Assembly (NCBI RefSeq): GCF_001194135.2
Contig: NC_068982.1
Span: forward strand, 76,963,573-77,027,572
DNA length: 64,000 nt
Source of the DNA: Octopus bimaculoides
Taxonomy: Eukaryota
Direction of reading: 5' to 3'
Position numbers and translations under genes: made by a program. Each line of letters opens with the position of its first letter. Position 1 is the first letter of the stretch. Below the pieces are notes generated by a model. That model was not told the DNA's origin. It worked only from the letters and a program-made list of their open reading frames with translations, and ran no database searches. Below are positions 7,001 to 55,065 of the stretch, one piece after another.

Positions 7001-10000
7001 CACCAACATCAACTTTGCCTTTCATCTTTTGAAGTGGATAAAATAAGTACCAGTTGAGCACTGGAATCAAGGTAATTGACTAGCCCCCTTCCCTGAAATT
7101 GTTGGCCTTGTGCCAAAATTTGAACCATTATTATTATTATTAACATTATGCGCTCTCTCTCTCTCTCTCTCTCATCAGATGATNNNNNNNNNNNNNNNNN
7201 NNNNNNNNNNNNNNNNNNNNNNNNNNNNNNNNNNNNNNNNNNNNNNNNNNNNNNNNNNNNNNNNNNNNNNNNNNNNNNNNNNNNNNNNNNNNNNNNNNNN
7301 NNNNNNNNNNNNNNNNNNNNNNNNNNNNNNNNNNNNNNNNNNNNNNNNNNNNNNNNNNNNNNNNNNNNNNNNNNNNNNNNNNNNNNNNNNNNNNNNNNNN
7401 NNNNNNNNNNNNNNNNNNNNNNNNNNNNNNNNNNNNNNNNNNNNNNNNNNNNNNNNNNNNNNNNNNNNNNNNNNNNNNNNNNNNNNNNNNNNNNNNNNNN
7501 NNNNNNNNNNNNNNNNNNNNNNNNNNNNNNNNNNNNNNNNNNNNNNNNNNNNNNNNNNNNNNNNNNNNNNNNNNNNNNNNNNNNNNNNNNNNNNNNNNNN
7601 NNNNNNNNNNNNNNNNNNNNNNNNNNNNNNNNNNNNNNNNNNNNNNNNNNNNNNNNNNNNNNNNNNNNNNNNNNNNNNNNNNNNNNNNNNNNNNNNNNNN
7701 NNNNNNNNNNNNNNNNNNNNNNNNNNNNNNNNNNNNNNNNNNNNNNNNNNNNNNNNNNNNNNNNNNNNNNNNNNNNNNNNNNNNNNNNNNNNNNNNNNNN
7801 NNNNNNNNNNNNNNNNNNNNNNNNNNNNNNNNNNNNNNNNNNNNNNNNNNNNNNNNNNNNNNNNNNNNNNNNNNNNNNNNNNNNNNNNNNNNNNNNNNNN
7901 NNNNNNNNNNNNNNNNNNNNNNNNNNNNNNNNNNNNNNNNNNNNNNNNNNNNNTATATATGCAGATATATGTGTATACATATAAGTACATGTATTTGTGT
8001 ATATAAACACACACACACACACACACACACACAGATATAATATTCATCTGTTGCTTGCAGTAGTTTTATTTACATTTACTTTTTTTCTTCCTTTTTTATT
8101 TACATTTACTTTTTTTCTTCCTAGTAGCTCATAATAACTTCATTTTTTTCCAGGTCTTGGTTTAGATCAGTTCCGTAAATTTGATCCAAAGGTAAGTTGC
8201 GTTTATGTTCTTTTATCAATTCGATTTTATTTATCTGGGTTGTCTTGAAATTTGTATCATGTCATCTTTTTGTTCCATTTTACTATGTTTTTGGGTTTTT
8301 TCTATTTTGTTTGTTTCTTAAGTAAGCATATCTTTCTTGAAAATACACACATATATACATGTAGTTATGTATTTGTATATATGTATATACATTAAATTGA
8401 TGTTATTATTTTAAAGTAAGTTTAAGAATAACAAGGGAGTATTTACTGGTGGCAGGGATTCCCTCTTGAGAGTAGCATCAAATTCTTTATGGAATTTGTG
8501 CTTGACTGAGACTTCGAGTTTCATGAAACAATTTATTCAATCCCTGACTAAACCATCAGGCAATACTTAAAGTCCTGTGTATAGACACAAACAAACATAC
8601 ACACACTCACACACACAAACAAATGCTAGCTTGTTTCCTAGTGCGAATAAGACTACCAAAAGCTTCATTATGAACAGGGATCAAAAAAATAACTGCACTG
8701 CATTGTCCATCATGCAGGTTAATAAAAGATGAGACCAGACCTTAAGTAGAGAGGTTCATTTGAAAAATATATTGCAGGACTCTATCCCAAGAATAGTGGG
8801 TGGAGAGAATGGATGATTGGATGTGTGTATGTATGTAAACACTAAGATACATATATGCTGCTGGAAAAAAAGCAGTGTATGTTATATATCTGTGTAATAT
8901 TTTTTATGTTGTAGATAAGTAATGCATTATTTTGAAGGGGTTTGTTTTTCTACATTAATAATATAATAATAATAATGAGCATATTGTATACTGTACTCGG
9001 TTACACAACTCATTGGAAAGGGGTAAAAGAGGAGAAGGAAACCAGTCAAGACAGCAATGTAAACCAAAACTACATGCATTGTACACATGTACTTGCTCAA
9101 AGCATAAAAGTGTAGCATACACTTGATCTATGTTATGTGTATTGCATAGGTTTTTATATTTTCATGTCATATATTTAATATTTCATCATTATTTAACATC
9201 CATGTTCCATACTGGCATGGGTTAAACTGTTTGACAAGATCCAACAGGTTCAAGGACCACTTCATGCTCCAATGTTTACTTTGGCATGGTTTCTATGACT
9301 GGATGCCCTTCTTGATGACAGCCACTTTATATATTGTACTGGGTGCTGGTTTGCATGTCACTAGCACTAGCAAGGTTGCCATGCAGCCGACAAAACTATA
9401 AACACCATTAGAGTTGGCTTTAGGCTAAGAGATGAAGTATTGGGGTGGTTAAAGAGTAAGAGAAGGGAGCAGATCAGGTTTCTTGCTGCTAAGGAGTCAC
9501 TTGGCTAAATGCATTTCAGAAGAGAGGGTGATCATTGTGGAATGGAAAAGAGATAAAATAGATAAGGATGAGGTACAAGGTGAGTAGAAATGAATTGGAG
9601 CAGTAGATCCAGGGGTGTGTGATTGTATGGCAGAGTGAGTGTTGGAGTCTGGGTGAGAAGGTGAATATAATGATGAATAAGTGTTAAGTGGATAAGTAGA
9701 GGTTGGGTAGAGCAGGTGTCTCTCTGGAATAAACTGAGGAAGCTGTTAATATATATTACATGGATAATAGTTTAGTTGTAACATTGATAATATCATCAAT
9801 CAAAATTTACACTATATCAACAATTTTATTGAGATAATTTTTTTTATTGACAGAAATATTGGTTTATATTGTGTAATATCTTATAAGTGTGTATATGTAT
9901 GTATTGAAGTTGTTTTTGTTGACATGATATTCATTTACCCAGGTAAATTAATGGATTTGTATCTTTTTGTTTTAATTATGTAAGGTTTTGTCATTCTTGT

Positions 10001-14229: not shown

Positions 14230-17200
14230 ATTAAATGGAGATTTCTGATCTCTTATAGCTGCTTAGTAGTAGTGAGGTGGTAATGGATGTAATATTTTGT
14301 TTAACAAGAATGGTATCAAATGTAGGTGGCTCATCGAAACCTAAATTCATGGTCACAGTTTCAGTTCCCTGCTGGAGTTATTTTCACTTCATTCTACTCT
14401 CACTAAGAACCTTTGGAAAGTCATCAACCTCACAATTTGTCATTTAGCAATATAAAAATTCTAGGTTTTTATACCTGCAAATTAAAGAGTAATCACTAGC
14501 ATGAAGAGATTGAACTGTGCCAGGTTAACCCTTAACAAATATCTCGATGACCCAGTGGATTACAGATCATTAATTAATTTAGTTTTTGTTTCCATGTTTA
14601 TCGACTGAGTGGTCTCTTTTCTTAAGAAGCTTTATACAATAAAAAATAACTATTAAATGTAGCAGCATTTCATGACAAAGTTATTTTGGATTGAGTGATT
14701 TTTAAATTCAAATTTAACTTGATTGAAAAACGTTGTCATTTGTGCATACACCCATGCATGCATGCACATTCATGTGTGTGTATATGTACATACATTCAAT
14801 GAACATGAATTTGGCTTGTGTTAACTAAAATGTTGAGTTTAGTAATTAAGTTTCTTTTATAAAATCTAATTCTATCTATCCCAGGGTGGGTGTGTTTTTC
14901 TTCAGACAAATGCCAATTTTCTTAGAAAAGAGATTTTCAATTACCTTTAGAATTTGAACTCAAAACTAAGCACTAAAACTTCATACATTAGAACAACAAC
15001 ATACCTCTCGGCTCTAATATATGCTACACCACTTTTCAATCTACAGATTTGGTGAAGGTTTTTCCCAAATATTTTACAGCTGGCTGATAACTTCCAATAC
15101 CCAAGTTTGTGGGCAAGCTTTCTGAATGTCACATTGGTGTTTGAGCCTTATTGAGCAGAATTCACTGAAATGATGTACTGATTGTGGAATGAGTGAAGTT
15201 CACTTTCCCAAGGAGAGACATTAATGGCATAACATAGACAGGGAACTAAAGTAATAAACAGGCTCAGTTCATACACCATAGTAATAGAGATATGTTGCCC
15301 TATCACCAGAACCCCTTTCTGTCTTTTATAAGGGTCAAAGGAATAGGCATTTTCATCATCATTTAACATCCATGTTCCATGCTGGCATGGGTTGGATGGT
15401 TTGACAGGATTTGATGGGTTCAAGGACTTCATCTTGCTTCACTGTCTGCTTTGACATGGTCTCTAGGATTGGATGCCCTTCCTAATGCCAAATGCTTTAC
15501 TGCATGTGCTCTGTGCTTTCCTTTTTTTTTTTTTATCATGACATGAACACTAGTGCGGTCATCATGCAGCTTGCAAGACTATGAATTCCGAAAGAGCTAG
15601 CTTTATGCTAAGAGATGAGTTAAGATATAAGAGAAGGGTCCAGAGTAGAACATCTTTCTTGCTGTAAAGGATTCACATGCCTACTCAAATTTTAGAAGAG
15701 ATGGCCGGTGTGATTGGGTGAAGCTGGAAAGAGATAAAATAGTGGTGATGTGATGTCTGGGTGAATGCTGAAGCTATGAGGCGAGTAGAAGTAAATTGGA
15801 GTTTGCTAGAAAGAATGAGAGATGGGAAATGGCTGAGATGCTAGGAAGAACAAGTGTTGATTGATAAATATTGGAGGTAGGGAAGAGTAATTGACAACTG
15901 TAAAGATTGAGGAAGATGGAGGGGTAGATAAGGGATGGGAGGCTGACCAATCATGAAGGACAGCAGAATAAACAAGTGGCTTTAATGTAACATAATACTG
16001 GCACTTGGTTTTGTTTTACAACCTTTGCAGGATTTTAAACCTGCTGTTTAAAAGCATCAGATTCACTTAAATAGTGTAGCATGTTTGTTAAGTGTCTGGA
16101 ATAAGTAAGACTGAACAATCATCATCATCATAAGTCAAGAAAATCTGGTATTTAGTCTTTTGCTTAATCTATGCTTATCAGCTTGAAAATTAAAAGGGTT
16201 TTTTTTTTTTTTTTACTTCAAAAATTTTGTAAGCAAGTGAATAGTTTGAAATATTTCCAGTAATCTTTGAATAATCTTTCATGTGTTATTGGTTGGTATT
16301 TTTGTTGTTTTTTTAATTCCATCTGTGGCCAAATATCTACAAGATATGTTCAGATTATATAAATATTAGTTCGTAAGTTATTAGTAGTATTTTTATTAAT
16401 ATTCTTTGTCTGTGGTGGGACATAGGACCACAAGTGTTTTCTTAGTTGCTGATATCAAAATATTTGATTTTAAAAAAGAACAACAATGTGCAGCTGGACC
16501 TTGATACAAAAGAAATATCTATCTTATTGCAGTTCCCTCCAAAAGTCTGCTGAATGAAACAAACTTTTAATATTTTCTATTTTAGAGTAAACTTTCAGAT
16601 TCAATTATTTTTCTTTGCATATAATGAATATAGTATTTAAATTTTTTTTCATTTTATTTCTCTTTCTTCTAAAATTTGCAGTGTATANNNNNNNNNNNNN
16701 NNNNNNNNNNNNNNNNNNNNNNNNNNNNNNNNNNNNNNNNNNNNNNNNNNNNNNNNNNNNNNNNNNNNNNNNNNNNNNNNNNNNNNNNNNNNNNNNNNNN
16801 NNNNNNNNNNNNNNTTTTAAAAAATATTTTGCATTCATTCATAAAATGCTTTTCGTTTTTTAAAAAAAATTTTTACTAACATGGCTTTACTAGGTCTACA
16901 AATTTTGACATTTGCATGTCTTTTTGAAGTGGATTTTTACATCGGAATACTCTCTTCATAATACTAATTTTTCTTTTCCTCCTCATAAACTGGAGTTACT
17001 TTTTATTTTTGAGTTAATGAAGTTTTATCTCTATCTTGCTTTTGCTTTTTTTTTTAACATGTAAATGAAGACTTCAAAATTAAATTAAAATATGTTTTTA
17101 AAATGTTGGTGTGACATAGCTGAGCTTTTATATTTTAAAATTCTGCATTTTTGCTTCTGCCTCATCAATACGCAATATATAGCTGTTATTCAGTGATATG

Positions 17201-25433: not shown

Positions 25434-28400
25434 TATAGAATTCTGCATGGTTTTTATTCTCCATGTTTCTCTCTTTGTCTTTCTAAACTCAATGTACATC
25501 CAAAGTTGAAAGAAACACCAAGAGCTATTCACTGGTATTTGCTCTTTTTACTGCTGCTAAATGTTGTTGTTGTTGTTTTTATTTTTTTTAAATCTTTATT
25601 GTCAACNNNNNNNNNNTGTATTTTTCTGCTTTTATTTACTTCCTTAATCAGAATCCTCGGACACCGAAGGTAAGTTTAAATTCCCCCTCAAGCTGCTTAC
25701 AAAAACAAGGCTTTAGTACTTAAAATACAAATTTAAAAAATCCAGAAATCAAGCATCCCATGGACAGTTTGCCTTATTTAGTTTTTTTTTAGTTTTTTTT
25801 TTTATTATGGGAGCTAAAATGTTTATTTCAAACCCTTTGCCTTAAAAATAAACCCAAACACCCCCTCCTCCAAGAAAAACCAACCCAGTCAAATTTACAC
25901 CTTGAAAATCACTGATGGAGTTGTTATTCCCTTACATTACACTATATCAAACACTGCTTTTGTCCCAACACAAAACCAATATATTGGCTTCTTTCACAAA
26001 TATCTGAATTATGCATTTTACCTCAGCTTATTTTATGCATAATGCAGCAATCAGTGGAATAATATGCCTACATTGGGAAGTTTCTCTTTAAATTTGAAGT
26101 TCAGAATGTTAGAAAAACTAAAACTAGTAGTTTGTAATTTTCAATAAGGAAATTATATGTGAGATTGGTCTCTTGTTGCATAGAGATAAATTACGATTGC
26201 AAGAAAAGTTTGAAATCAGGTACACTCATAAGTACAGTTCTATATTTTGTATGTTGCATGAATAATCATTAGACAAAGATCATACCTTATTTACATTATT
26301 TACATTTGACGGATATTTGTCCTCATCTTGTTTGTTGTTATCACAAAGTTTCGGCTGATATACCCTCCAGCCTTCTTCAGGTGTCTTGGGGAAATTTTGA
26401 ACCTGGGTTCTCATTCCTAAGGTATTTTTCGATGTTGTTATTATTATTATTATTGTTCAGGTCACTGCTTGGAATCGAACTAGGAATCTTGGGGTTAGTA
26501 GCTCACACTCTTAACCACTATGTCATATGCTCATGGGCAATTATGGAATGAATTCTAGCACTTATAAACCTAATATTTTTCTATCCTTCCTTAATACTGG
26601 TTCCCATATGCTGCTCATATCTGTACTCGGTCTGCTTAGGAGGTTGTTGTGTCCTAGCATATGGGCTGCTTCTTTTAGTTTTCCTATTTTTCAGTGATGT
26701 TCTCTATTATTTTAACTTCATCCCACAGGGTGAGCTGGTCTCCATTTTTCCATACATGATTAGCTATACCCGATTTATCAATATCTCCTCATGTCACAGC
26801 TTTGCGATGTTCATCTACCCTTATTTTGAGGGGGTGGCATACTTCGCCTTTGTTTAACCTACCACAGCTGCATAGGATGGAGTACACGCAGTCTTTGGTC
26901 ATATTCTCTTCTATTGGTGGTTTTACTCGAAGGAGATATTTGCAAAGTGTTATATTACTCTTGAATACTGTCCTGATGTCATATGGGCCGCATATCTTTT
27001 GCATCTTTTCAGAGAGGCCTTTCACATAGGGTAAACAGACTGTGGACAGTTTATTGGCCTCATCCTCTCTCTTCTTCATAATTGGAGTGGATAGTATACT
27101 TTTGGAGTAGTTGTTGCTTAACAGATCGTTACTGAGCTTGATCATTTTCTCGTGGTGTGTCTCACAATCACTACTTATATTCTTTGCACGATGTTTTAGG
27201 CACTGAGCAATCCCTCTTTTTACACTGTATGGATGGTGGGAATTGAAGTTGAGGTATCGTCCAGTAAAGGTCGGCTTGTGGTATACGGGCGTCCTGAATC
27301 CATACTTGGTGCGTGTTATTAATACATCTAGGAATGCCAGCTGATTGTCTTTTTTGAGGAATGAAGTTAAAATAATAGACAGAGAACACCACTGGAAAAT
27401 ACGAAAACTAAAAGAAGCAGCACATATGCTAGGACACAACAACCTCCTAAGCAGACCAAGTGCAGATATGAGCAGCATATGGGAACCGGTATTAAGGAAG
27501 GATAGAAAAATATTAGATTTATAACCCCTAAAATTCACTCCATAATTGCCCATGAGCATATGGCGTAGTAGTTAAGAGCGCAGTCTACTAAAGCCAAGAT
27601 TCCGAGTTTGATTCCAAGCAGTGACCTGAACAATAATGATAATAACAACAACATTGAAAAATACCTTAGGAATGAGAACCCAAGTTCAAAATTTCCCCAA
27701 GACACCTGAAAAAAGCTGGAGGGTATATCAGCCAAAACGTTGTGTTAACAACAAACAAGATGAGGACAAATATCCGTCGAATGTAAATAATGTACACTCA
27801 TAAGTAGTTTTGGAAGAAAGGTTAGCAACATACGATGAAGAGAAACAAGAACAAGGAGGAAGGGGCAGGGAGGGAACAATAAATTTTTTTTTTTCTGATA
27901 TGTGAGTCAAATGGAAGGTGCTGACATCTTATTTGAGGACTTGAGCAAATTCAAAACTACATAAAGGTGCTATAAAATAAAGTTTATATTAATGAGTTTC
28001 TAAGTGTGTTATTTATGAGATTAAATAATTTTACAGTTTGAGGTGCTTTACATATTAAGATAATTTTTCTTTTCTTCTTTTGAGAGGTAAGTTTGACATA
28101 CATGACAACAGATTAGGGTTTAATTTTTGTTTTGTTTTTCCTTCCAATGAAAAACTCTGCACCACTGAATATGGTTGTCATGTGTACAAATATTGTCTTG
28201 GATGTGACCTTTCAATAGGACAAGATATTTATATTGAAATCTTTTGCTCTAAAACTTGACACCTTGAAGAATTGGCCGCCTCTGTAGATATCTAAATTAT
28301 GTGTATTTACATGGGAGCAGGTATGTCTGTTTAGTTAAAAGGTTTGCTTTGCAACTACATGGTTTGAAAATTATTCCCACTGCACAGCATCTTAAGCAAG

Positions 28401-46055: not shown

Positions 46056-48149
46056 TCTTTTTACACTTTACAACATTTAATGCTAATTTTGTTTTTCAGC
46101 TAAAACTTTTACATTAAGTTTATCTTATTTCACCTTACAGTCCTAAAAACATCACTAACAACTGCATATGTTCCTGCATTTACTTTGTAAATAACTTTAA
46201 GTTGAAATATGTTGATTTGTTTAAATAAAAACTTTTTACAAACAAGGAAAGACTGAATTCATTTCTAATCTAATGTTTATATAAGTAAAGGATCACATTT
46301 CAATTACTGGGTGCAGTCATCTGGATACACTTTCTTTGGGACGAGATCTGCAACTTATGATTTCATACTTTGTTTAAACCATTAATTGAAATTTTAACTT
46401 CTGGATCTTCATTCATCACAGGACATACAATTGCTATCCGTAGAGATACCAAGCATTATATCTCAACAAAATACCTAGCATAGGATGAAGCTTTTGCCCT
46501 GGTAATTTTCCAAGTTATAAAAACCCTATAATTGCTTTTGTGTACGGTGAAAAGACTTCATCTGTAGTATATGTACAAATGTTTTATTTCATCAAAAGCA
46601 ATTTCAGCCTAACTGTTGGTACAACCTTGTTCGCACCTGATATATCTATAAACAAAATAAGATTGTTCCATCATATTGCAATTAGTTTTCCCTGTTAAAT
46701 CTTTTCTCCAAAGTGTCTCTAAGTCCTTCTGTAACTGTTAGAAATCTTTCAGTGCCAAAGTTCTTTATATTTTGAAGACCTTCCCTATCAGAAGATCAAA
46801 GTCATCTATTTGTTACATGCTTCAGATGTTCTGTATTATAGACATTCAAAATTTGTCACCTGGTTAAGGCAATATGAATTCACAAAACTACCAACTTTAT
46901 ATGCATGTAGTAAACTTGTACAGCTAGAAAAATTCCATTTTCTTAGCAATAAAAAGATGTATCATCCAAGCTGCTGCATAAAAATCTGCAATTTCAAAGA
47001 AATTACCATCCACCTAAGCTCAATATATGATCCAACTCTTTCCTATTCATATTGGATGACTTACAATAGACTTCTGCTGTTGAGTATAAGTACCTTGAGA
47101 CCAAATACATAGCTAACTCCTTAGTCAACCATTCTTGTCCCAACATTTAGCTAGATACAAAACCCATATTACATGCAATGCTCATGTCTGCCAAGAGTTT
47201 AGTCAACATTCAAATATACATTTCAAACTCCAGTTAATAACACAAAACTCATTCAATAGTAAAAGCCTTTATACATAAAAGATGTTACATTGAAATTTCT
47301 AAAGTGATATTATCTAGCAATTAGGAAAAACAATTGTTCATAGAATGGTGGTGATGAAATACTTGAGGTGTGAATTGTTTTAAAGCAGAGCCAGTGGCAT
47401 ACAGTATCATCAAAAAAGTTTGCTTTTTATTTTTTTTTTTAAGTTGCACAATATTTAGCAACACTACCACCTAATGCCAAAAGCTACCCCCAACTGGATG
47501 GATGATTCTTAATGCATTAAAAAGAAAACTGCATTTAAGATCCATGGTAAAATCCTTAGTTTCCTCCTCGTCTATGAATTTAATGATTATGAAATTTGCT
47601 ATAGAATCTGAAACATAACTTTACCATGAATTCACTTATTTGAAAGTCTTATTCAAAAAATGCTTTCTTCAAATGATGATGCATTGATGTAAAATTGATT
47701 TTAGGCTTAGAATCTACTCCGCAATGTTGTCATGTTCATAAATTCTCCATTGTCAAGCTTCATGTAGAGCAAGANNNNNNNNNNNNNNNNNNNNNNNNNN
47801 NNNNNNNNNNNNNNNNNNNNNNNNNNNNNNNNNNNNNNNNNNNNNNNNNNNNNNNNNNNNNNNNNNNNNNNNNNNNNNNNNNNNNNNNNNNNNNNNNNNN
47901 NNNNNNNNNNNNNNNNNNNNNNNNNNNNNNNNNNNNNNNNNNNNNNNNNNNNNNNNNNNNNNNNNNNNNNNNNNNNNNNNNNNNNNNNNNNNNNNNNNNN
48001 NNNNNNNNNNNNNNNNNNNNNNNNNNNNNNNNNNNNNNNNNNNNNNNNNNNNNNNNNNNNNNNNNATATCAAGCAGAAAATTTTAAATAATGTTATAAAG
48101 GATTTTTTTCTATATATATATATATATAAAAAAAGAAATTAATACTTAC

Positions 48150-48326
48150 TACCACCATAATTATTCATTCCGCCACCACCTCCCATTCCTCCACCACCCA
48201 TTCCACCTCCAATTCCTCCAAAGCGGCCACTGCCCATGGGGCCGTCACCATAGCCACCACCAACACCACCACCATCACCACGGCCATCAGGAGTAGAGTT
48301 CAAGAAGAGCTCTATGTAACGATCCT
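48150..48326 (-). CDS. HNRNPF/H: hnRNP F/H coding exon 8 (end of qRRM3 plus Gly-rich tail)
   Basis: cttTAG acceptor, GTA|GTAAGT donor; encodes [21 protein letters not shown]...GGMNNYGG. Confidence 0.92.
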
Positions 48327-51300
48327 CTAAAGAAAGAAAGAAAATGAATCAAAACATGAAACAAATACAGACATAAGTATTGTGAGATAAGGAATTAAAC
48401 TTACGAATGTAATTTTTGTGTCTTTCCATGGAAGATACAGCATCCTGATGGGAACTGAAGTCAACATCTGCTTCTCCAGTTGGCCTGTTATTTCTATATT
48501 CAAATTCCATCCTGATTGGATCCAAAGGTCTGAAGAACTGCAAATCAGACAAAAGTTTATGATGGCATGCACACACAACATGCATGTAAAACAAGACCAA
48601 TTTGAAAATATACTTACATCTCTAATATCCTGTTCAATAGCTTGGAATGGTAGACCTCTCATGTGTACAGAATGTCCAGATTTGCTGACATACATACTGC
48701 CAGGTGTTGCACCTTTTGGTCTTGCAAAAGATCCACCTTGTAATCGACCTCTGGTTTGAGGACGAAGATTTCCTCTTCTGTTGAGACCACCAAAACCCAT
48801 GCCACCACCATAACCACCTCCATACTCATCATAGTCATCTTCAAAGAATCCTACAAAAACAAATACAACCATAAATTAAAGTGGTCTAAGTTTACATAAA
48901 GGAATCAAGACTTATGTTCATTAAAACATGAAACACCCACCTTTGACATTTCTGCCACCTCTTCCTCGACCATAACCACCAGCAGCAAAGCCACCACCAC
49001 CCATGGCATTCATACTGCCTCCAAAACGATCATTTCTATCATAAGGACCAGGTCTGTTACCAGCCATGAATCCTAGATTACGTTGTCGTGGTGGTCCAAC
49101 ATTTGCGTAAGCCTCTTGCAATGTACTAGGGAATATTTCAATATATCTAAAATAAGAGAGGAACAATATTAACACTGGCACAATGCTTAAAAACATGAAT
49201 AGAAAACATCCCCATTTATACACAGGATACTGAAATTTACGTCAAAGATAATGCATTACAAGTTTAAGTTATTTATATTTCAGTATCCTGTGTATTAAAT
49301 AAAGGGGGGAAAAATAAAGAAAACTGAAAAAACCCATTCACACATCATCTACACACTAGTCACTAGATTTAGCCAGGTTATGTTGCTACTGTAATACTAA
49401 GTAGCTCATTCAGCCAAAACCCTTAACACTAGGGACATTTGAATGATCAAGCTTGAGAATTCATAACATTCAGGATTTTTTTTTGTCTTCCTTCTTTCCC
49501 AAAGAAGTTACACAATTACTTGAGGAATAACATCCGAAGATCCCCACCAACCAAATAATACTACCTTCAAGCTTGATCAAATCAAAAACCCATATAAAGA
49601 ACATCTAGTTTCAAACGAAAATACATGCACAAATGACAAACTATAATTTGAAATCTGTTACCAAAAAATAGAAATTCAGAAATACTCCTGCAAGCTAAGG
49701 AGGAACCAGTCTCAGTTTCATTTTATAAAGATTTCATGTATGTATTAAATGTATCCATTAGAAAATTGCCAGTATTCACTAATACTCAAACAGGCCATAA
49801 ATTTAGCTAACAGAAAATATACTAGTCCAGATGAATTTTATCCAATTCAAATTGCCCATTAAGTGAATTTTTCAAAAAAGCCTATCTTAACCTTGGGCAA
49901 AAATAACTAAAGAATGGATCCAGGCCACTCACTAAATATAGGCTGAATGAGCTTTTACATATAAAATTACAATTTTTTTTTTTTAATCTTAAAACAACCC
50001 TTCTTAACTCCAGTATAATTCATTTAAAATTTAATCTACAATGATGATAATACAAAAACAATTACAGAACTTTATAGAAAGAAAAAACAAAATCAAAACA
50101 CAGAAAAATGCTTTTCATAGAATTATAAGAGAGGCACAATGTTTTAAGCCAACCAGATTTTACTTTGAGAATGAAAAGAATCAATTTATTCAACGAAAAT
50201 TTTATATGAAAAAATATTTGAAAGAAAAGCATTTTTCCAGTGTGCAAATTTATCCCAATATAAATTATTAAAAATTAAAAAAATTAATCCAGTCATTCAA
50301 ACTCAGCACACAAACCAACAATAGATAAGCCCCAACAGGCCCATCCGTCCTCCCACCTGTGCCCCAGTCTTGCCATGTGTTTATCCAATGCTTTTTTGGC
50401 TATTTCTGGTGATGCATACTGTACATAGGCCTCCCCCGTGCTGCGCCCCTGTCGGTCCTCAGGTAGCATAATCCCATTGGGGACAATCTCCAGCCCTACA
50501 CACCCGTCCCAATCAGAAAGACACATAATGAAGCAACAAGTGAAACTTATCATGCAAAAAATATTAAAAACCAATTTAAATTAAGATAAAAATATCAAAG
50601 TGCATACAAAAAAGTTAAATATTCAAAATACAAACATTATAATAAGGTGGGTTTTTTTTTAAATACAAGCCCAACCTTTAAAATTCGATCAACATTATTA
50701 TTCTTCATAACTAATAAATTAGCAATTTAACATTAATAAACAAGATATAAATATATATATATTTACAGTATTTAACAAGCTATTTCATTTAAAAACATTT
50801 TCTATATATCATTCCAATAAGCTAACAAAACAGGAAGAAAGGACTAACTTGAAACAAATAAAAAAAAAAATACAACTCAAGAGCCTTATAATTTTTATAC
50901 AATCAAAATTTAAATTACAAAATTACATCAGCAGAACATTTACAATACAAATACATGGCAATGTACAAACAAGATTAACAATTCAATATCTAAAATGGTT
51001 AATTTAGAAAATAGCAAAGTATACAAATTTTTCCCTATTAAAATATTACAGCTCTGTAATTAAGTACATATAATCAACAACCTACACAATCTCAAAAAAA
51101 TAAAAAAGGGACAGGGAAACTTACTACCAGCATCTGAAAAACGATAATTAAGGGGAACAATATATACAGGTAAATATATAACATCTAACTATATACACTA
51201 TTTAGACTACAAACTTGACCACATATCTTTATAGAAATTATAAAGCAAAGGTAGAGACCAAGCTCCTGCAATAATTTCTTACACTGATAATGCAGTTATT

Positions 51301-53586
51301 TGTAGTCAGTCAGATACTGATTACAACTAAAAAGTCCATAAAAAAAAAACTATTCAGTTGTAAAGAAAAAATCTTACCTGTGAAAAATTGAGCAATCTCT
51401 TCTTTTGAACATCCAAATGGCAATCCTCTCATCCTTACCACAGCATCACTTTGACCAGTCACCTGACTGGATCCAGCTCGCTTGATAACCCAATCCATCT
51501 CGCTTTTCTTAGATCTGAAGACTACAAACGGTTAGATTGAAAGCAATGTCGTTAGAAACCAAAATCCTTACTTTCCCCATTCCTAAATCTCCACAAGAAT
51601 TTACAGTAAATGTGAATAATAGATCAATTTCAAAGATATGAATGTAAAAAAGACATGGTTTTCTAGAAATACTAAATAAACGAAATGTTTTACTATGGTG
51701 ATGCTACAAACAGGATGTCCAGTATTTTGTCAATGATTCTAATTAAACATTGAGTTAAGTCTGCTTCTCAACCAAACGGTTTGAGGTTCATCCCATTGCA
51801 TGACACTTTGGCAAATGCCTACTGTAGCCCCAGGGTGATGGAAGCCTTGAGTAGTTGTAAACAAGTGTCACTAGTTTACAATATTCTGCAAAAGAACATG
51901 TCTGACCACAGGGAAATATCTTGCTTGGCAGCAGATGGTTAGCAAACAAGGGCATTCAACCATAGAAATCTGCCTTGAAAAACAAGCATAAAAAGTGAAA
52001 ACTAAAACAACTTCAGATTAGTAAACACAAATACATCCATATGTAAGATCACATTAAGAGAAATTGCTATCTTAGAGATACACCTACAATGACAAACACC
52101 TTTAAACTGCTGTCGCAATTGGAAGTATTTCGTTCCCAAAATTGTGAAAACATGTGTCCATGGAGGAATATTACCTTGCCTGGAAATAGGTGAGGGTTGG
52201 CAACCAGTTAAAATTTGCATCAAATTCCATGTGACTCATGAATAAACTGGATATTAACATTTCCCTTCCTGAAGTAAATATTTCATTTCCACTTCAGTAT
52301 TTCAAGTAAACCATTTTTTTTTTATACATTCCAATTATTTTCGAAATTGTGCCTTAATTTTCACATTTCCCAAATTTTTCATTCCTTACCTTCAATGTAT
52401 CTCTGACCCATATGAGCATTATTCTTTTTCAATGCCAGTTCCTTGTCCTCGTTGCTGACAAACTCCACAAAAGCCTCACCACTAGGTCGACCCTCTCTTG
52501 AGTAAGTGAAGTGAACTCCCATTTCCTCACCATAAACTCGGCAGCCTGTTGGAAATGGAAGGCAGATCCAAATAGATTCACACCATTTAAGATATTCAGC
52601 AAATCTCACNNNNNNNNNNNNNNNNNNNNNNNNNNNNNNNNNNNNNNNNNNNNNNNNNNNNNNNNNNNNNNNNNNNNNNNNNNNNNNNNNNNNNNNNNNN
52701 NNNNNNNNNNNNNNNNNNNNNNNNNNNNNNNNNNNNNNNNNNNNNNNNNNNNNNNNNNNNNNNNNNNNNNNNNNNNNNNNTTTTTTTTTGTTGCTCTAAA
52801 CCAGTGGTTCTCAACTAAGGGCCCCAGAAAAAATTTTGCTGTAGATAGATGTATGCAAGAAACGGTTAGGTTTCAACCTCCACAAGTTAATGTGAGGAAA
52901 AGATATGAATTTTGAAAGACCCTTCTACACGACTAGGTTTTAATCATCGAATGTCTGCGGGTCCACCAGAATAAAATAGTAATCAAAGGGATCCATAGAT
53001 AAAAAATGATTGAGAACCCTTGCTTTAAACGAATCCATCAAAACCGTTCATTAGGTAAATTACTCCTTTAAATGAAATAGGTATATAAATTTATCATGTA
53101 AACGTCCGACACTGGAGTCACAACAATGTAGAATTTTTTTTTCTTTCTTGAGTTCAAGGACTCATAAAACCGGTTAGCCGGTTTCCATGACCGAGTTCGC
53201 AACATTAGCTCTGAACTGGACGCCGGTCCGTTACATGGTTCAAAGCCAGCTATTTTGAGTGGAAAAGATTAAGTCATTTACATCAACTCCAGTACTTTAG
53301 TACTCTTTTATCGATCCCGAAGGGATGAAAGGAAAAGCTGAGCTCGGCAAGATTTGAAAAAGCTGCCGAGTATAGAAATGGCAGTTATTACATTTTATTT
53401 TGATGTGTTTTCCTTCTCTATATAAACCACTGCCTCTAAAACGAAAAACGGATGTAATACTAAAAAATTTCAGTCCAAACCTTCAAAGAACTTGAGAACA
53501 TCTGAGGCTGTGGCAGCCCATGGAAGACCACGGAGTCGCACAACACATCCCTCGTCGTCATTATGTTGATCTTGCGACTGTTGCAT
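48150..53586 (-). CDS. HNRNPF/H: hnRNP F/H family splicing factor (three qRRMs, Gly/Tyr/Arg-rich linker, Gly-rich tail), spliced gene span; 3' end of CDS unresolved next to the gap at 47775-48065
   Basis: Three qRRM signatures: VVRLRGLPW...[11 protein letters not shown]...MGQRYIEVF; [20 protein letters not shown]...[11 protein letters not shown]...LGHRYIEIF; [10 protein letters not shown]...[10 protein letters not shown]...RYIELFLNS. All eight exons join in phase. Confidence 0.95.
48405..48537 (-). CDS. HNRNPF/H: hnRNP F/H coding exon 7 (qRRM3)
   Basis: ttgcAG acceptor, TTC|GTAAGT donor; encodes [44 protein letters not shown]. Confidence 0.94.
48618..48850 (-). CDS. HNRNPF/H: hnRNP F/H coding exon 6
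   Basis: ttgtAG acceptor, GAT|GTAAGT donor; encodes [13 protein letters not shown]...[21 protein letters not shown]. Confidence 0.93.
48941..49146 (-). CDS. HNRNPF/H: hnRNP F/H coding exon 5
   Basis: tttAG acceptor, AAAG|GTGGGT donor; encodes YIEIFPST...RPGPYDR...[10 protein letters not shown]. Confidence 0.92.
49218..49295. repeat. Perfect 19-bp inverted repeat with 40-nt loop in hnRNP F/H intron 4
   Basis: ATACACAGGATACTGAAAT (49218-49236) and ATTTCAGTATCCTGTGTAT (49277-49295). Confidence 0.9.
50357..50495 (-). CDS. HNRNPF/H: hnRNP F/H coding exon 4 (139 nt, qRRM2, G-run flanked)
   Basis: gtgtAG acceptor, CAG|GTGGGA donor; encodes [47 protein letters not shown]. Confidence 0.95.
51378..51521 (-). 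CDS. HNRNPF/H: hnRNP F/H coding exon 3
   Basis: ttgtAG acceptor, CAG|GTAAGA donor; encodes [14 protein letters not shown]...[18 protein letters not shown]. Confidence 0.95.
52390..52545 (-). CDS. HNRNPF/H: hnRNP F/H coding exon 2 (qRRM1)
   Basis: aacAG acceptor, GAAG|GTAAGG donor; encodes [29 protein letters not shown]...GQRYIE. Confidence 0.94.
52802..53022 (+). mobile_element. hAT (Charlie-like) MITE in hnRNP F/H intron
   Basis: CAGTGGTTCTCAAC ... ATTGAGAACCCTTG termini; 8-bp TSD CTCTAAAC/CTTTAAAC. Confidence 0.78.
53481..53586 (-). CDS. HNRNPF/H: hnRNP F/H first coding exon (exon begins at 53645 with 5'UTR)
   Basis: ttctAG acceptor at 53647-53646, accATG, GAAG|GTTTGG donor; encodes [35 protein letters not shown]. 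Confidence 0.92.
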
Positions 53587-53938
53587 GGTGACAGCAAATT
53601 TACGAGAAATCTGGAAAGTGACTTCAAAAGACCTTGCTCAGCTCCCTAGAAATAAATATTTGTACTAAGTGATTAACTGGAGCAATTAATAAAATCAAGT
53701 TAAATTACAAGTTACAACATGAAAAAAAAAATACAAGTATGAACACGCTTTAGTTACGTTTATTACACGGAAGCAAAAAATATAAATAGTTGCCCTAATT
53801 TGAATTAAAATCAAGTTACGAAAAAAGAAAGTTTTCTGAAATGCCGATATATAAGAAAAGAAATAAAAATATAAAGTGAAGTAGAGCGTTCTAGTAAAAA
53901 GAAATGTCTAATGCTTTGAGTGTATATGTATGTATGTG

Positions 53939-53986
<48 letters not shown>

Positions 53987-55065
53987 TAAACCAATCCTTT
54001 GTATTTCCTCCTCTTACGACATTGCGATAAGTATCAGAGGAGGACGCCTGACTTAACAAAAGAATAGTGAAATGAGGACAACTATGAGTTACTTTGTATA
54101 ACGAAGCTTTTACTAAAATATAATAGTCAACACAAGAATAAACTACGTAGATTTTTTTTTAATACAAATAGAAGTAAAAAAGAAAACAATTGAATGTGGG
54201 CTTTGTTGAAAGCTGCCGCTCGCCATGATGGGGGGGGGGCAAATATAAAGCCTCACCGGTATTTTTTAACAAAAACAATATACATTCAATAATTTTCAAA
54301 CTAATAAAATAATATACGGGAATAAATATTTAAGGTATTCGTTTGAAGGCAAATAGCATGATGGTGCCAATTTTTTTAATGCTAAATGGTTTCAAATTGA
54401 AAGCTATGTTGGTTGAACAAGAAACGTGTAAAAGTGAAGTATTTTCTCAATATGGAGTTGATAACCTTTCTCTTCTTTTAACTCTTTTGTACTTTCAGTT
54501 CAAAATACCACTCAGAAACAAATTAAATAGAAATAATATTTTCGCAAATAAAAAATGTTCATTAGTACATATATTTAGACATTAAAAACGAAAGCTGTTG
54601 AGTGTTTTCTGAGGGAGAGGAATTGTTACGAAACATTTGTTAGAGACGAGTCAATGGCTGAAACAGTTTTTCCCGCCCAGACGGACTTCATTCGATATTT
54701 CAAGGAGAATTATGTTGTGATATCACTTAACGATAGAAACAGAATATCTTACAATAAAATATCGACTAACAAAATGCACATAAAAATATGCGAACAAATT
54801 TAAGATAAATAACGTAAAAATTAAAACAAAGAAGCGGAATTTTTTTTTTTTGTTCCTTGTCCGGCAAGACAAAAGATGGCACGTGCAGCCGATACGTGAT
54901 ACAAGATAAAACTACATTTTCCTTAAGATAATAACTTAAATTTAGAGCTAAATCGTAATTAATATTCCTCTTCACTCTTTATAAATTAAACAACTAAAAC
55001 TGTACTATATAATCATACATACAAACACCAAAACAGTTTCTTCCGCCTCCAAACCTGCGACTTAC

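Follow-up and report, generated by a model that had tools for sequence, protein, structure and literature searches.

In human, HNRNPH1, which encodes a heterogeneous nuclear ribonucleoprotein (hnRNP), is under negative autoregulation via poly-G motifs, skipping of its exon 4 resulting in nonsense-mediated mRNA decay (NMD), and loss of the poly-G motifs inside and around this exon by somatic mutation raises both inclusion and mRNA (bioRxiv 10.1101/686956). The protein crosslinks to its own exon 4, as mapped by individual-nucleotide resolution crosslinking and immunoprecipitation (iCLIP) (Pararajalingam et al., bioRxiv 10.1101/686956 / Blood 2020), and the skipped form is stabilised by cycloheximide; the autoregulatory skipping was confirmed with cycloheximide and antisense oligonucleotides (PMC13001508). 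Here, the orthologous exon is described for the hnRNP F/H gene of Octopus bimaculoides, which lies on the minus strand of a 64,000-nucleotide stretch of contig NC_068982.1 (hereafter the window, to which all octopus positions refer). An earlier note on this DNA had invoked the human precedent, which is documented for the poly-G motifs, for skipping leading to NMD and for motif mutation raising inclusion, and had proposed that the same feedback circuit is kept in a mollusc, a proposal that now appears well supported by the comparison between species.

Within the same gene family, the Drosophila glorund transcript glo-RC, whose reading frame is shifted and stops early, is degraded by NMD in a Upf1-dependent manner (Hansen et al., 2009; PMC2689934). 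It resembles the predicted octopus product as a frameshifted, early-stop isoform that rises when NMD is blocked, whereas that study discusses neither G-runs nor autoregulation, and the likeness concerns the shifted frame and the NMD sensitivity, which for octopus is predicted. Regarding SR proteins, autoregulation by poison exons with ultraconserved elements has been described (PMC11791180, PMC12632421). These resemble the proposed hnRNP F/H switch in the homeostatic coupling of alternative splicing to NMD in a splicing regulator and in the unusual conservation of non-coding and synonymous sequence; they differ in that a non-coding exon is included to poison the mRNA, whereas in hnRNP F/H a coding exon would be skipped, and in that they are conserved within vertebrates, whereas the hnRNP F/H element is common to cnidarians and bilaterians. 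PTBP1 autoregulates by skipping of an essential exon, exon 11, coupled to NMD; there too the protein binds its own motif around a frame-shifting exon of constitutive type, represses it and gives rise to an NMD substrate, but the gene is unrelated and the motif is pyrimidine-rich instead of consisting of G-runs.

On sequence grounds, human HNRNPH1 exon 4 has its ortholog in exon 4 of the octopus gene, which is 139 nt long and thus not a multiple of three, runs from phase 1 to phase 2 and encodes the C-terminal half of the second quasi-RNA recognition motif (qRRM2). All five of its glycine codons are GGG, while none of the 75 in the seven other visible coding exons is (GGT 40, GGA 23, GGC 12; Fisher p = 4.2e-8), and about ten G-runs fall within roughly 190 nt in and around the exon. 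At the 3' splice site the acceptor reads ...ctgattGGGacGGGtgtgtag/GG (here and below, a slash marks a splice junction), the pyrimidine fraction at -20 to -3 is 0.35 compared with 0.65-0.94 at the six other acceptors of the gene, and the acceptor AG (50497-50496) falls within an AGGG that spans the intron-exon junction; a candidate branch point of intron 3 is ctgAt, with the A at 50513. At the 5' splice site, which reads CAG/gtGGGaggacggatGGGcctgttGGGG, one G-run (50354-50352) lies inside the U1-pairing region of the donor GTGGGA and two more runs follow, at 50342-50340 and at 50333-50330; combined with the last run of the exon, these donor-region runs form a relaxed G-quadruplex motif with loops of 7, 9 and 6. 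The length of the exon, its exclusive use of GGG, the acceptor devoid of a normal pyrimidine tract, the G-runs at the donor and the very AT-rich introns had all been pointed out in the earlier note, and the assembled gene model bears out each of them.

Wherever the preceding codon ends in G, a glycine codon yields a GGG run regardless of its own third base, and the other exons therefore hold some G-triplets as well. What is peculiar to exon 4 is the choice of GGG, which lengthens runs to G4-G5 (CAGGGGC, ACGGGGGAGG, CTGGGGC), and the density of the runs; the GGG codons do not create every exonic run, some being only lengthened by them. The donor of exon 5 (48935-48940), GTGGGT, likewise has a G-run in its core, unlike every other splice site of the gene outside exon 4, and is followed by an intron of only 90 nt.

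Regarding the rarity of this cluster, the introns of the gene are 69% A+T. Intron 3 has four runs of three or more G in 882 nt, two of which lie inside its final 15 nt, and intron 4 has 12 in 1210 nt, three of them inside its first 27 nt. Both the upstream and the downstream flank of exon 4 bear runs, compared with none or one at the remaining exons. On the gene strand, just five places in the 64 kb have at least three runs per 30 nt, two of these being the two ends of exon 4, and 50316-50529 is the sole place on either strand of the window with at least nine runs per 190 nt. The anatomy of the exon and the statistical rarity of its G-runs are thus direct observations.

For comparison across animals, ortholog loci were fetched from two bivalves (Solemya and Pinctada), a snail (Biomphalaria), a brachiopod (Lingula), an annelid (Capitella), a beetle (Tribolium), a bird (zebra finch), a sea anemone (Nematostella) and a placozoan (Trichoplax), nine animals in all, and the exact-block exon models reproduce every annotated protein. 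The vertebrate representative is the genomic sequence of zebra-finch HNRNPH1, not that of human, and the nine eumetazoans referred to below are octopus and eight of the orthologs, Trichoplax being left out, with a divergence of more than 500 million years. The orthologous exon is 139 nt long in octopus and in all nine orthologs and has the same position in qRRM2. The comparison of glycine codon usage across animals that the earlier note had suggested gave a strongly positive result, since GGG makes up 41 of the 50 glycine codons in this exon of the nine eumetazoans but 83 of 713 (about 12%) elsewhere, with the five conserved glycine positions being GGG in 9/9, 7/9, 8/9, 9/9 and 7/9 species.

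The intronic flanks show the same pattern. The last 40 intronic nt upstream of the exon hold two to three G-runs in all nine species, while among the 63 other internal acceptors just 2 reach two runs; across species the acceptor AG precedes GGTTGGAGAT (in octopus, GGCTGGAGAT), and the donor is CACAG/GTGGG in eight of the nine, usually with further runs downstream. Intron sequence can be aligned between octopus, the two bivalves and the brachiopod, where the upstream motif (A/T)TTGGG-N1-3-(C/T)GGG(T) is common to Octopus, Solemya, Pinctada and Lingula (ATTGGGaCGGGT, ATTGGGtCGGGT, GTTGGGcTGGGC and ATTGGGtcTGGGT), as can the downstream flank in the octopus, bivalve and brachiopod set (GTGGGAGGAcggatGGGCCTgttGGGG, GTGGGAGGAaGGGCCTcgcGGGG and GTGGGAGGAtGGGCCTaaGGG). 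Within the exon, pairwise codon identity at identical amino acids is 54.5% (50.3% without glycine), compared with 38-43% in other exons encoding RNA recognition motifs, and between Octopus and Solemya nucleotide identity (0.82) exceeds amino-acid identity (0.80), while in the neighbouring exon the values are 0.72 and 0.83. Together with the conserved intronic runs, these values indicate that the synonymous sites of the exon are constrained and its motifs under selection, in agreement with the selection on synonymous codons that had been suggested for octopus; conservation throughout the Eumetazoa sampled and the synonymous constraint are seen directly in the alignments.

With regard to vertebrate HNRNPH1, octopus exon 4 shares 77% amino-acid identity (tblastn) with the zebra-finch exon, which has the same length and phase and encodes the same half of qRRM2. 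The likeness extends to the five GGG glycine codons, the G-runs within the final 30 nt of the intron upstream, the GTGGG donor and a frameshift to a premature stop upon skipping, and the human skipped product D6RDU3 has a tail of the same +1-frame kind. The two differ in the downstream flank, which in vertebrates is GTGGGGATGGATGG with fewer G3 runs and in octopus and bivalve is GTGGGAGGA-GGGCCT-GGGG, and in that the experimental data are human. The last 26 exonic nt and the following GTGGG (AAACACAAGGAAAGAATAGGGCACAG/GTGGG) are identical between a protobranch bivalve (L007 14723-14753) and the bird (L006 9898-9928); octopus has three amino-acid changes at that exon end, where a G-run is still kept (CTGGGGCACAG).

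In Trichoplax, the exon (L008 2086-2224) is likewise 139 nt long, with one of six glycine codons being GGG, no flanking G-runs, a ttttgtag acceptor and a GTAATA donor, and its codon identity to the other species is 0.35. By these features, Trichoplax is in effect a natural negative control for the signature, which either arose after the placozoan split or was lost in Placozoa. Regarding its age, the earlier note had suggested a comparison across bilaterians; the signature is conserved across the bilaterians sampled, but it is older than that scope, being already present in Nematostella. On balance, we favour the view that the switch and its cis-architecture, characterised by G-runs placed between the branch point and the AG, by AGGG at the acceptor, by five fixed glycine positions encoded by GGG and by GTGGG at the donor, date to the cnidarian-bilaterian ancestor and have been kept for more than 600 million years in at least seven phyla, being absent from or lost in Placozoa.

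Chance, local base composition or a gene-wide codon bias might be thought to produce such a pattern, as the GC content at third codon positions in exon 4 (0.54) is somewhat higher than in neighbouring exons. Against this stand the GGG count of 5/5 versus 0/75 (p=4e-8), the status of the cluster as the only one in the window with at least nine runs per 190 nt, and the fact that the pattern recurs at orthologous sites of nine lineages whose synonymous divergence is saturated, together with its absence in Trichoplax. The GGG test, the cluster scan and the cross-species comparison of codons and flanks rule this explanation out, its probability being negligible.

An intronless copy in Bradybaena similaris (L001 1001-2143) was considered as a control for decay of the GGG codons after release from selection on splicing and rejected; its pattern (GGG, GGA, GGG, GGG, GGT) equals that of the intron-containing Biomphalaria gene, and the copy is therefore either young or uninformative. 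It encodes 380 aa, is presumably a retrogene and adjoins an ADA2-like gene, and the same species has two intron-containing paralogs (P0246, P0249); at least two F/H genes are recorded for several gastropods. In Biomphalaria glabrata (L002 6001-13465), one GenBank annotation divides the gene into two models precisely at the GTGGGG donor of this exon, and one of the resulting proteins (P0086, 184 aa) ends in ...IGHRWGFYRHIQHLV, reading into the intron. Similar read-through tails (GHRWG...) were found in a partial protein of Heterotrigona (P0113) and in a vertebrate-type transcript contig (P0134), which may be a sign of poor recognition of the donor or of occasional retention of the downstream intron.

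Regarding the consequence of skipping, direct joining of exons 3 and 5 in octopus shifts the frame and leads to a premature TAG at 49075-49073 on the minus strand, 24 codons past the skip. This stop precedes the exon 5 donor (48941) by 132 nt and has three junctions and more than 1 kb of RNA downstream of it. Both this stop and its distance from the next junction had been correctly given in the earlier note. In the other species modelled, the distance from premature stop to junction is 69-323 nt. Under an alternative model of NMD it is the long 3' untranslated region (UTR) after the premature stop that would signal decay, and the prediction of NMD is therefore independent of the model.

Transcripts of this kind are present in sequence collections. 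The predicted 159-aa octopus product, used as a query, matched many short proteins whose tails read the conserved RYIEIF... beginning of the following exon in the +1 frame. In vertebrates these include products from fish (P0137, P0138, P0146) and peafowl (P0152) and the primate/human 184-aa HNRNPH1 form D6RDU3; in invertebrates they include a beetle protein (P0124, 92% identical to Tribolium madens) and Apis cerana V9IDM8 (P0132), to which a Logan contig is related. Two more sequences of this type are apparently from arthropods. A beetle mRNA contig (L011, 1457 nt, with both UTRs) has TTTTTCACAG/ATACATCGAA joined directly, and past this junction the remainder of the hnRNP F/H protein runs on in another frame, which makes it an authentic exon-skipped transcript. 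The skipped isoform is thus observed in arthropods as well as in vertebrates.

Taken together, it is probable that the product of the octopus gene occludes the splice sites of its own exon 4, causing skipping, frameshift and decay, and that the exon constitutes a homeostatic switch. The quasi-RRMs of the F/H protein would bind the G-runs, which in its own pre-mRNA are placed such that two fall after the putative branch point and before the AG, one lies across the AG, four are exonic and owe their existence or their extra length to GGG glycine codons, one is part of the 5' splice site (GTGGGA, +3 to +5) and two lie just downstream. When abundant, the protein would cover these runs and hinder U2AF/U2 and U1 at sites that are already weak, so that the exon would be skipped, leading to the frameshift stop and NMD or, at best, to a truncated protein with qRRM1 only; when it is scarce, the exon would be included and full-length protein made. 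By analogy with the human gene, we infer for octopus that the protein binds the runs, that this leads to skipping of the exon instead of its inclusion, and that NMD acts on the skipped mRNA. The octopus runs are found at the same places as in human, in core splice signals, which fits negative feedback by occlusion of the sites.

The same runs could instead act as enhancers, allowing a constitutive exon to be used in spite of its poor splice sites, in which case the bound factor, F/H or another, would promote inclusion and there would be no homeostatic skipping, or the feedback would be positive. G-triplets are well known as intronic enhancers when they lie just past a 5' splice site, hnRNP H/F is able to activate 5' splice sites that are weak, and the weakness of both sites of octopus exon 4 makes some compensating element plausible. 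Yet destroying the runs in the human ortholog increases inclusion, and the octopus runs replace the pyrimidine tract and sit inside the AG and at donor positions +3 to +5, where occlusion fits better than recruitment. Furthermore, weak sites and runs have been kept together for more than 500 million years rather than the sites being strengthened, Trichoplax has ordinary sites and no runs, and skipped isoforms are found in several phyla, which leaves an enhancer function as an unlikely explanation.

Alternatively, an RNA G-quadruplex (rG4) across the 5' splice site could mask the donor as a structural switch, sensitive for example to temperature or ions, with the F/H protein being secondary or irrelevant. 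A canonical motif (four runs of at least three G, with loops of at most 7) covers the end of the exon together with the donor in Solemya, Pinctada, Lingula and Tribolium, the octopus motif is of the relaxed kind with a 9-nt loop, and in recent work rG4s near splice sites are tied to exon repression and to cooperative HNRNPH binding (PMC12446472, PMC13001508). Finch HNRNPH1, Biomphalaria, Capitella and Nematostella, though keeping the G-runs and GGG codons, have no four-run motif at this site, and a single quadruplex accounts neither for the two upstream runs nor for those scattered through the exon. As a unifying explanation, with a canonical motif in only four of the nine species, the quadruplex was demoted to a possible refinement, and as the sole mechanism it is distinctly improbable; the two mechanisms may coexist, the quadruplex more likely being a modulator than the core mechanism. 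Tribolium bears a second canonical G-quadruplex motif, across its 3' splice site.

Another regulator, for instance an hnRNP A1-like binder of UAGGG at tgtAGGGC, would make the exon a node of cross-regulation and not an autoregulatory one. UAGGG resembles the hnRNP A1 consensus, and the acceptor is UAG/GG(C/U) in Octopus, Solemya, Pinctada, Biomphalaria and Tribolium. The UAG itself is not conserved, being CAG or AAG in Lingula, Capitella, finch and Nematostella, and the conserved part is the GGG; moreover, it is HNRNPH1 itself that was found on this exon in human, and we regard regulation by another factor as very improbable.

Several points nevertheless weigh against an autoregulatory switch in octopus. 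No octopus or mollusc product of the E3-E5 junction was found, the 159-aa predicted product giving no match above 64% identity among 5.8 billion proteins, an absence that says little because NMD substrates are rare in assemblies. Regarding the earlier claim that the premature stop fits the rule for NMD, the distance of 132 nt and the three downstream junctions agree with it, but the '50-nt rule' is a vertebrate rule, and rules for NMD dependent on the exon junction complex are not established for molluscs, a point that weakens the case little in view of the very long 3' UTR behind the stop. Intronic G-runs beside 5' splice sites are classically enhancers, and it is the human data, with the location of the runs in the core signals, that give the proposed effect its sign; the actual regulators could be other proteins that bind G-runs or UAGGG. 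Finally, Capitella has no G-runs within 40 nt downstream of the exon and Biomphalaria has only three of the five GGG codons, deviations which imply that the element tolerates erosion.

Regarding the gene model (Table 1), exons were found by tblastn with the human hnRNP H1 sequence, their bounds were set from splice sites and they were assembled by script. Eight coding exons are visible, the 3' end of the gene being lost in an assembly gap (48065-47775), and their 431-aa translation matches the annotated octopus protein (P0232, 434 aa; annotated as heterogeneous nuclear ribonucleoprotein H3, 'hnRNP H3') at 100%. Judging by the protein, this is a single-type invertebrate hnRNP F/H gene, encoding qRRM1 and qRRM2, then a Gly-rich linker and then qRRM3. 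In phmmer searches against PDB, the top match is to qRRM1-2 of human hnRNP H (6DHS, residues 12-193, E=3e-71), qRRM3 (residues 292-392) matches the hnRNP F/H' entries 2HGN and 1WEZ, and further best structure matches are to the qRRMs of hnRNP F (2KFY, 2KG0, 2KG1, which we take to be complexes of hnRNP F with AGGGAU) and to Drosophila glorund; the precomputed Pfam families are PF28442, PF00076 and PF28441. The motif classes of the family, RGLP[WFY], [ST]GEA and R-Y-[IV]-E, are all found in the octopus translation, as RGLPW, RGLPF and RGLPF, as SGEAF, TGEAY and TGEAD, and as RYIEVF, RYIEIF and RYIELF in the three qRRMs, respectively. In the hnRNP F-AGGGAU structures, the RGLP, GEA and RY[IV]E loop motifs serve the recognition of G-tracts.

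Table 1. Features of the octopus hnRNP F/H gene and its exon 4 (window positions), with canonical G-quadruplex motifs at orthologous loci.
Feature	Position	Strand	Remarks
hnRNP F/H gene, visible coding part	48150..53586	minus	tblastn, splice sites read manually
Coding exon E1	53586-53481	minus	
Coding exon E2	52545-52390	minus	
Coding exon E3	51521-51378	minus	144 nt; 3' end ...TTTTTCACAG; upstream partner of predicted skip junction
Coding exon E4	50495-50357	minus	139 nt; proposed regulated cassette
Coding exon E5	49146-48941	minus	206 nt; 5' start ATATATTGAA; +1 frame once E4 is skipped
Coding exon E6	48850-48618	minus	
Coding exon E7	48537-48405	minus	
Coding exon E8	48326-48150	minus	
Exon 4 3' splice-site region	50496..50520	minus	no pyrimidine tract
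G-runs upstream of exon 4 acceptor	50510-50508, 50505-50503	minus	
Exon 4 internal G-runs	50475-50473, 50449-50446, 50437-50433, 50365-50362	minus	
Exon 4 5' splice-site region	50330..50356	minus	donor GTGGGA and downstream runs
Predicted skip junction E3-E5			GATTGCTCAATTTTTCACAG/ATATATTGAAATATTCCCTA
Inclusion junction E3-E4			...CACAG/GGCTGGAGATTG
Inclusion junction E4-E5			...GGGGCACAG/ATATATTG
G-run-bearing RNA segments (candidate F/H targets)			uugggacgggug, ACGGGGGAGG, CAGgugggagg
Canonical G-quadruplex motifs (Solemya, Pinctada, Lingula, Tribolium)	L007 14741-14771, L009 15887-15915, L010 2327-2358, L005 1686-1707 and 1522-1547		

The annotated protein P0232 ends in ...NNYGGSKY, its final three residues and stop being a read-through of the E8 donor (GGTGGTA/gtaagtattaa; 48150-48135). 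This tail comes from the intron beside the 291-N gap (47775-48065), which implies that the true C-terminal exon or exons are missing from the model. Other runs of N in the window are found at 657-760, 7184-7953, 16688-16814, 25607-25616 and 52610-52780, the last of which sits in intron 1 of the hnRNP F/H gene; a dip in GC content at 7-8 kb in the composition profile is due to the gap of 770 N. A (TA)n/(CA)n microsatellite and a run of 11 C (53930-54000 and 54229-54239) lie 350-650 nt upstream of the start codon, presumably within the promoter or 5' region.

The octopus exon is the ortholog of an already known autoregulatory cassette, the added point being that its cis-architecture appears to be older than the cnidarian-bilaterian split. 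In the open-access literature, coverage of which was not exhaustive, we found no prior description of the depth of invertebrate conservation (present in a cnidarian, absent in a placozoan) or of the base-level conservation of the intronic runs and GGG codons, the one related invertebrate finding being the Drosophila glo-RC NMD isoform. Autoregulation of splicing factors by unproductive splicing is widespread, and single events are usually lineage-specific with sequence conservation usually confined to vertebrates; here, one orthologous exon keeps both intronic and synonymous-site signals from sea anemone to bird. While splicing specialists would expect the result in principle, alignable intronic signals across Eumetazoa are unusual. 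The exon is a trap for gene predictors, as the split Biomphalaria annotation in GenBank illustrates, and could be used as a positive control in studies of alternative splicing and NMD in cephalopods. If the proposed age of the switch holds, it would be among the oldest orthologous regulated splicing events and a very rare case of intronic regulatory sequence that can be aligned across cnidarians, molluscs, insects and vertebrates. The exon offers a tractable system for asking how old feedback loops of this type are, how the binding code of a protein constrains codon choice in its own gene and whether G-run binders that occlude splice sites represent an ancestral mode of regulation.

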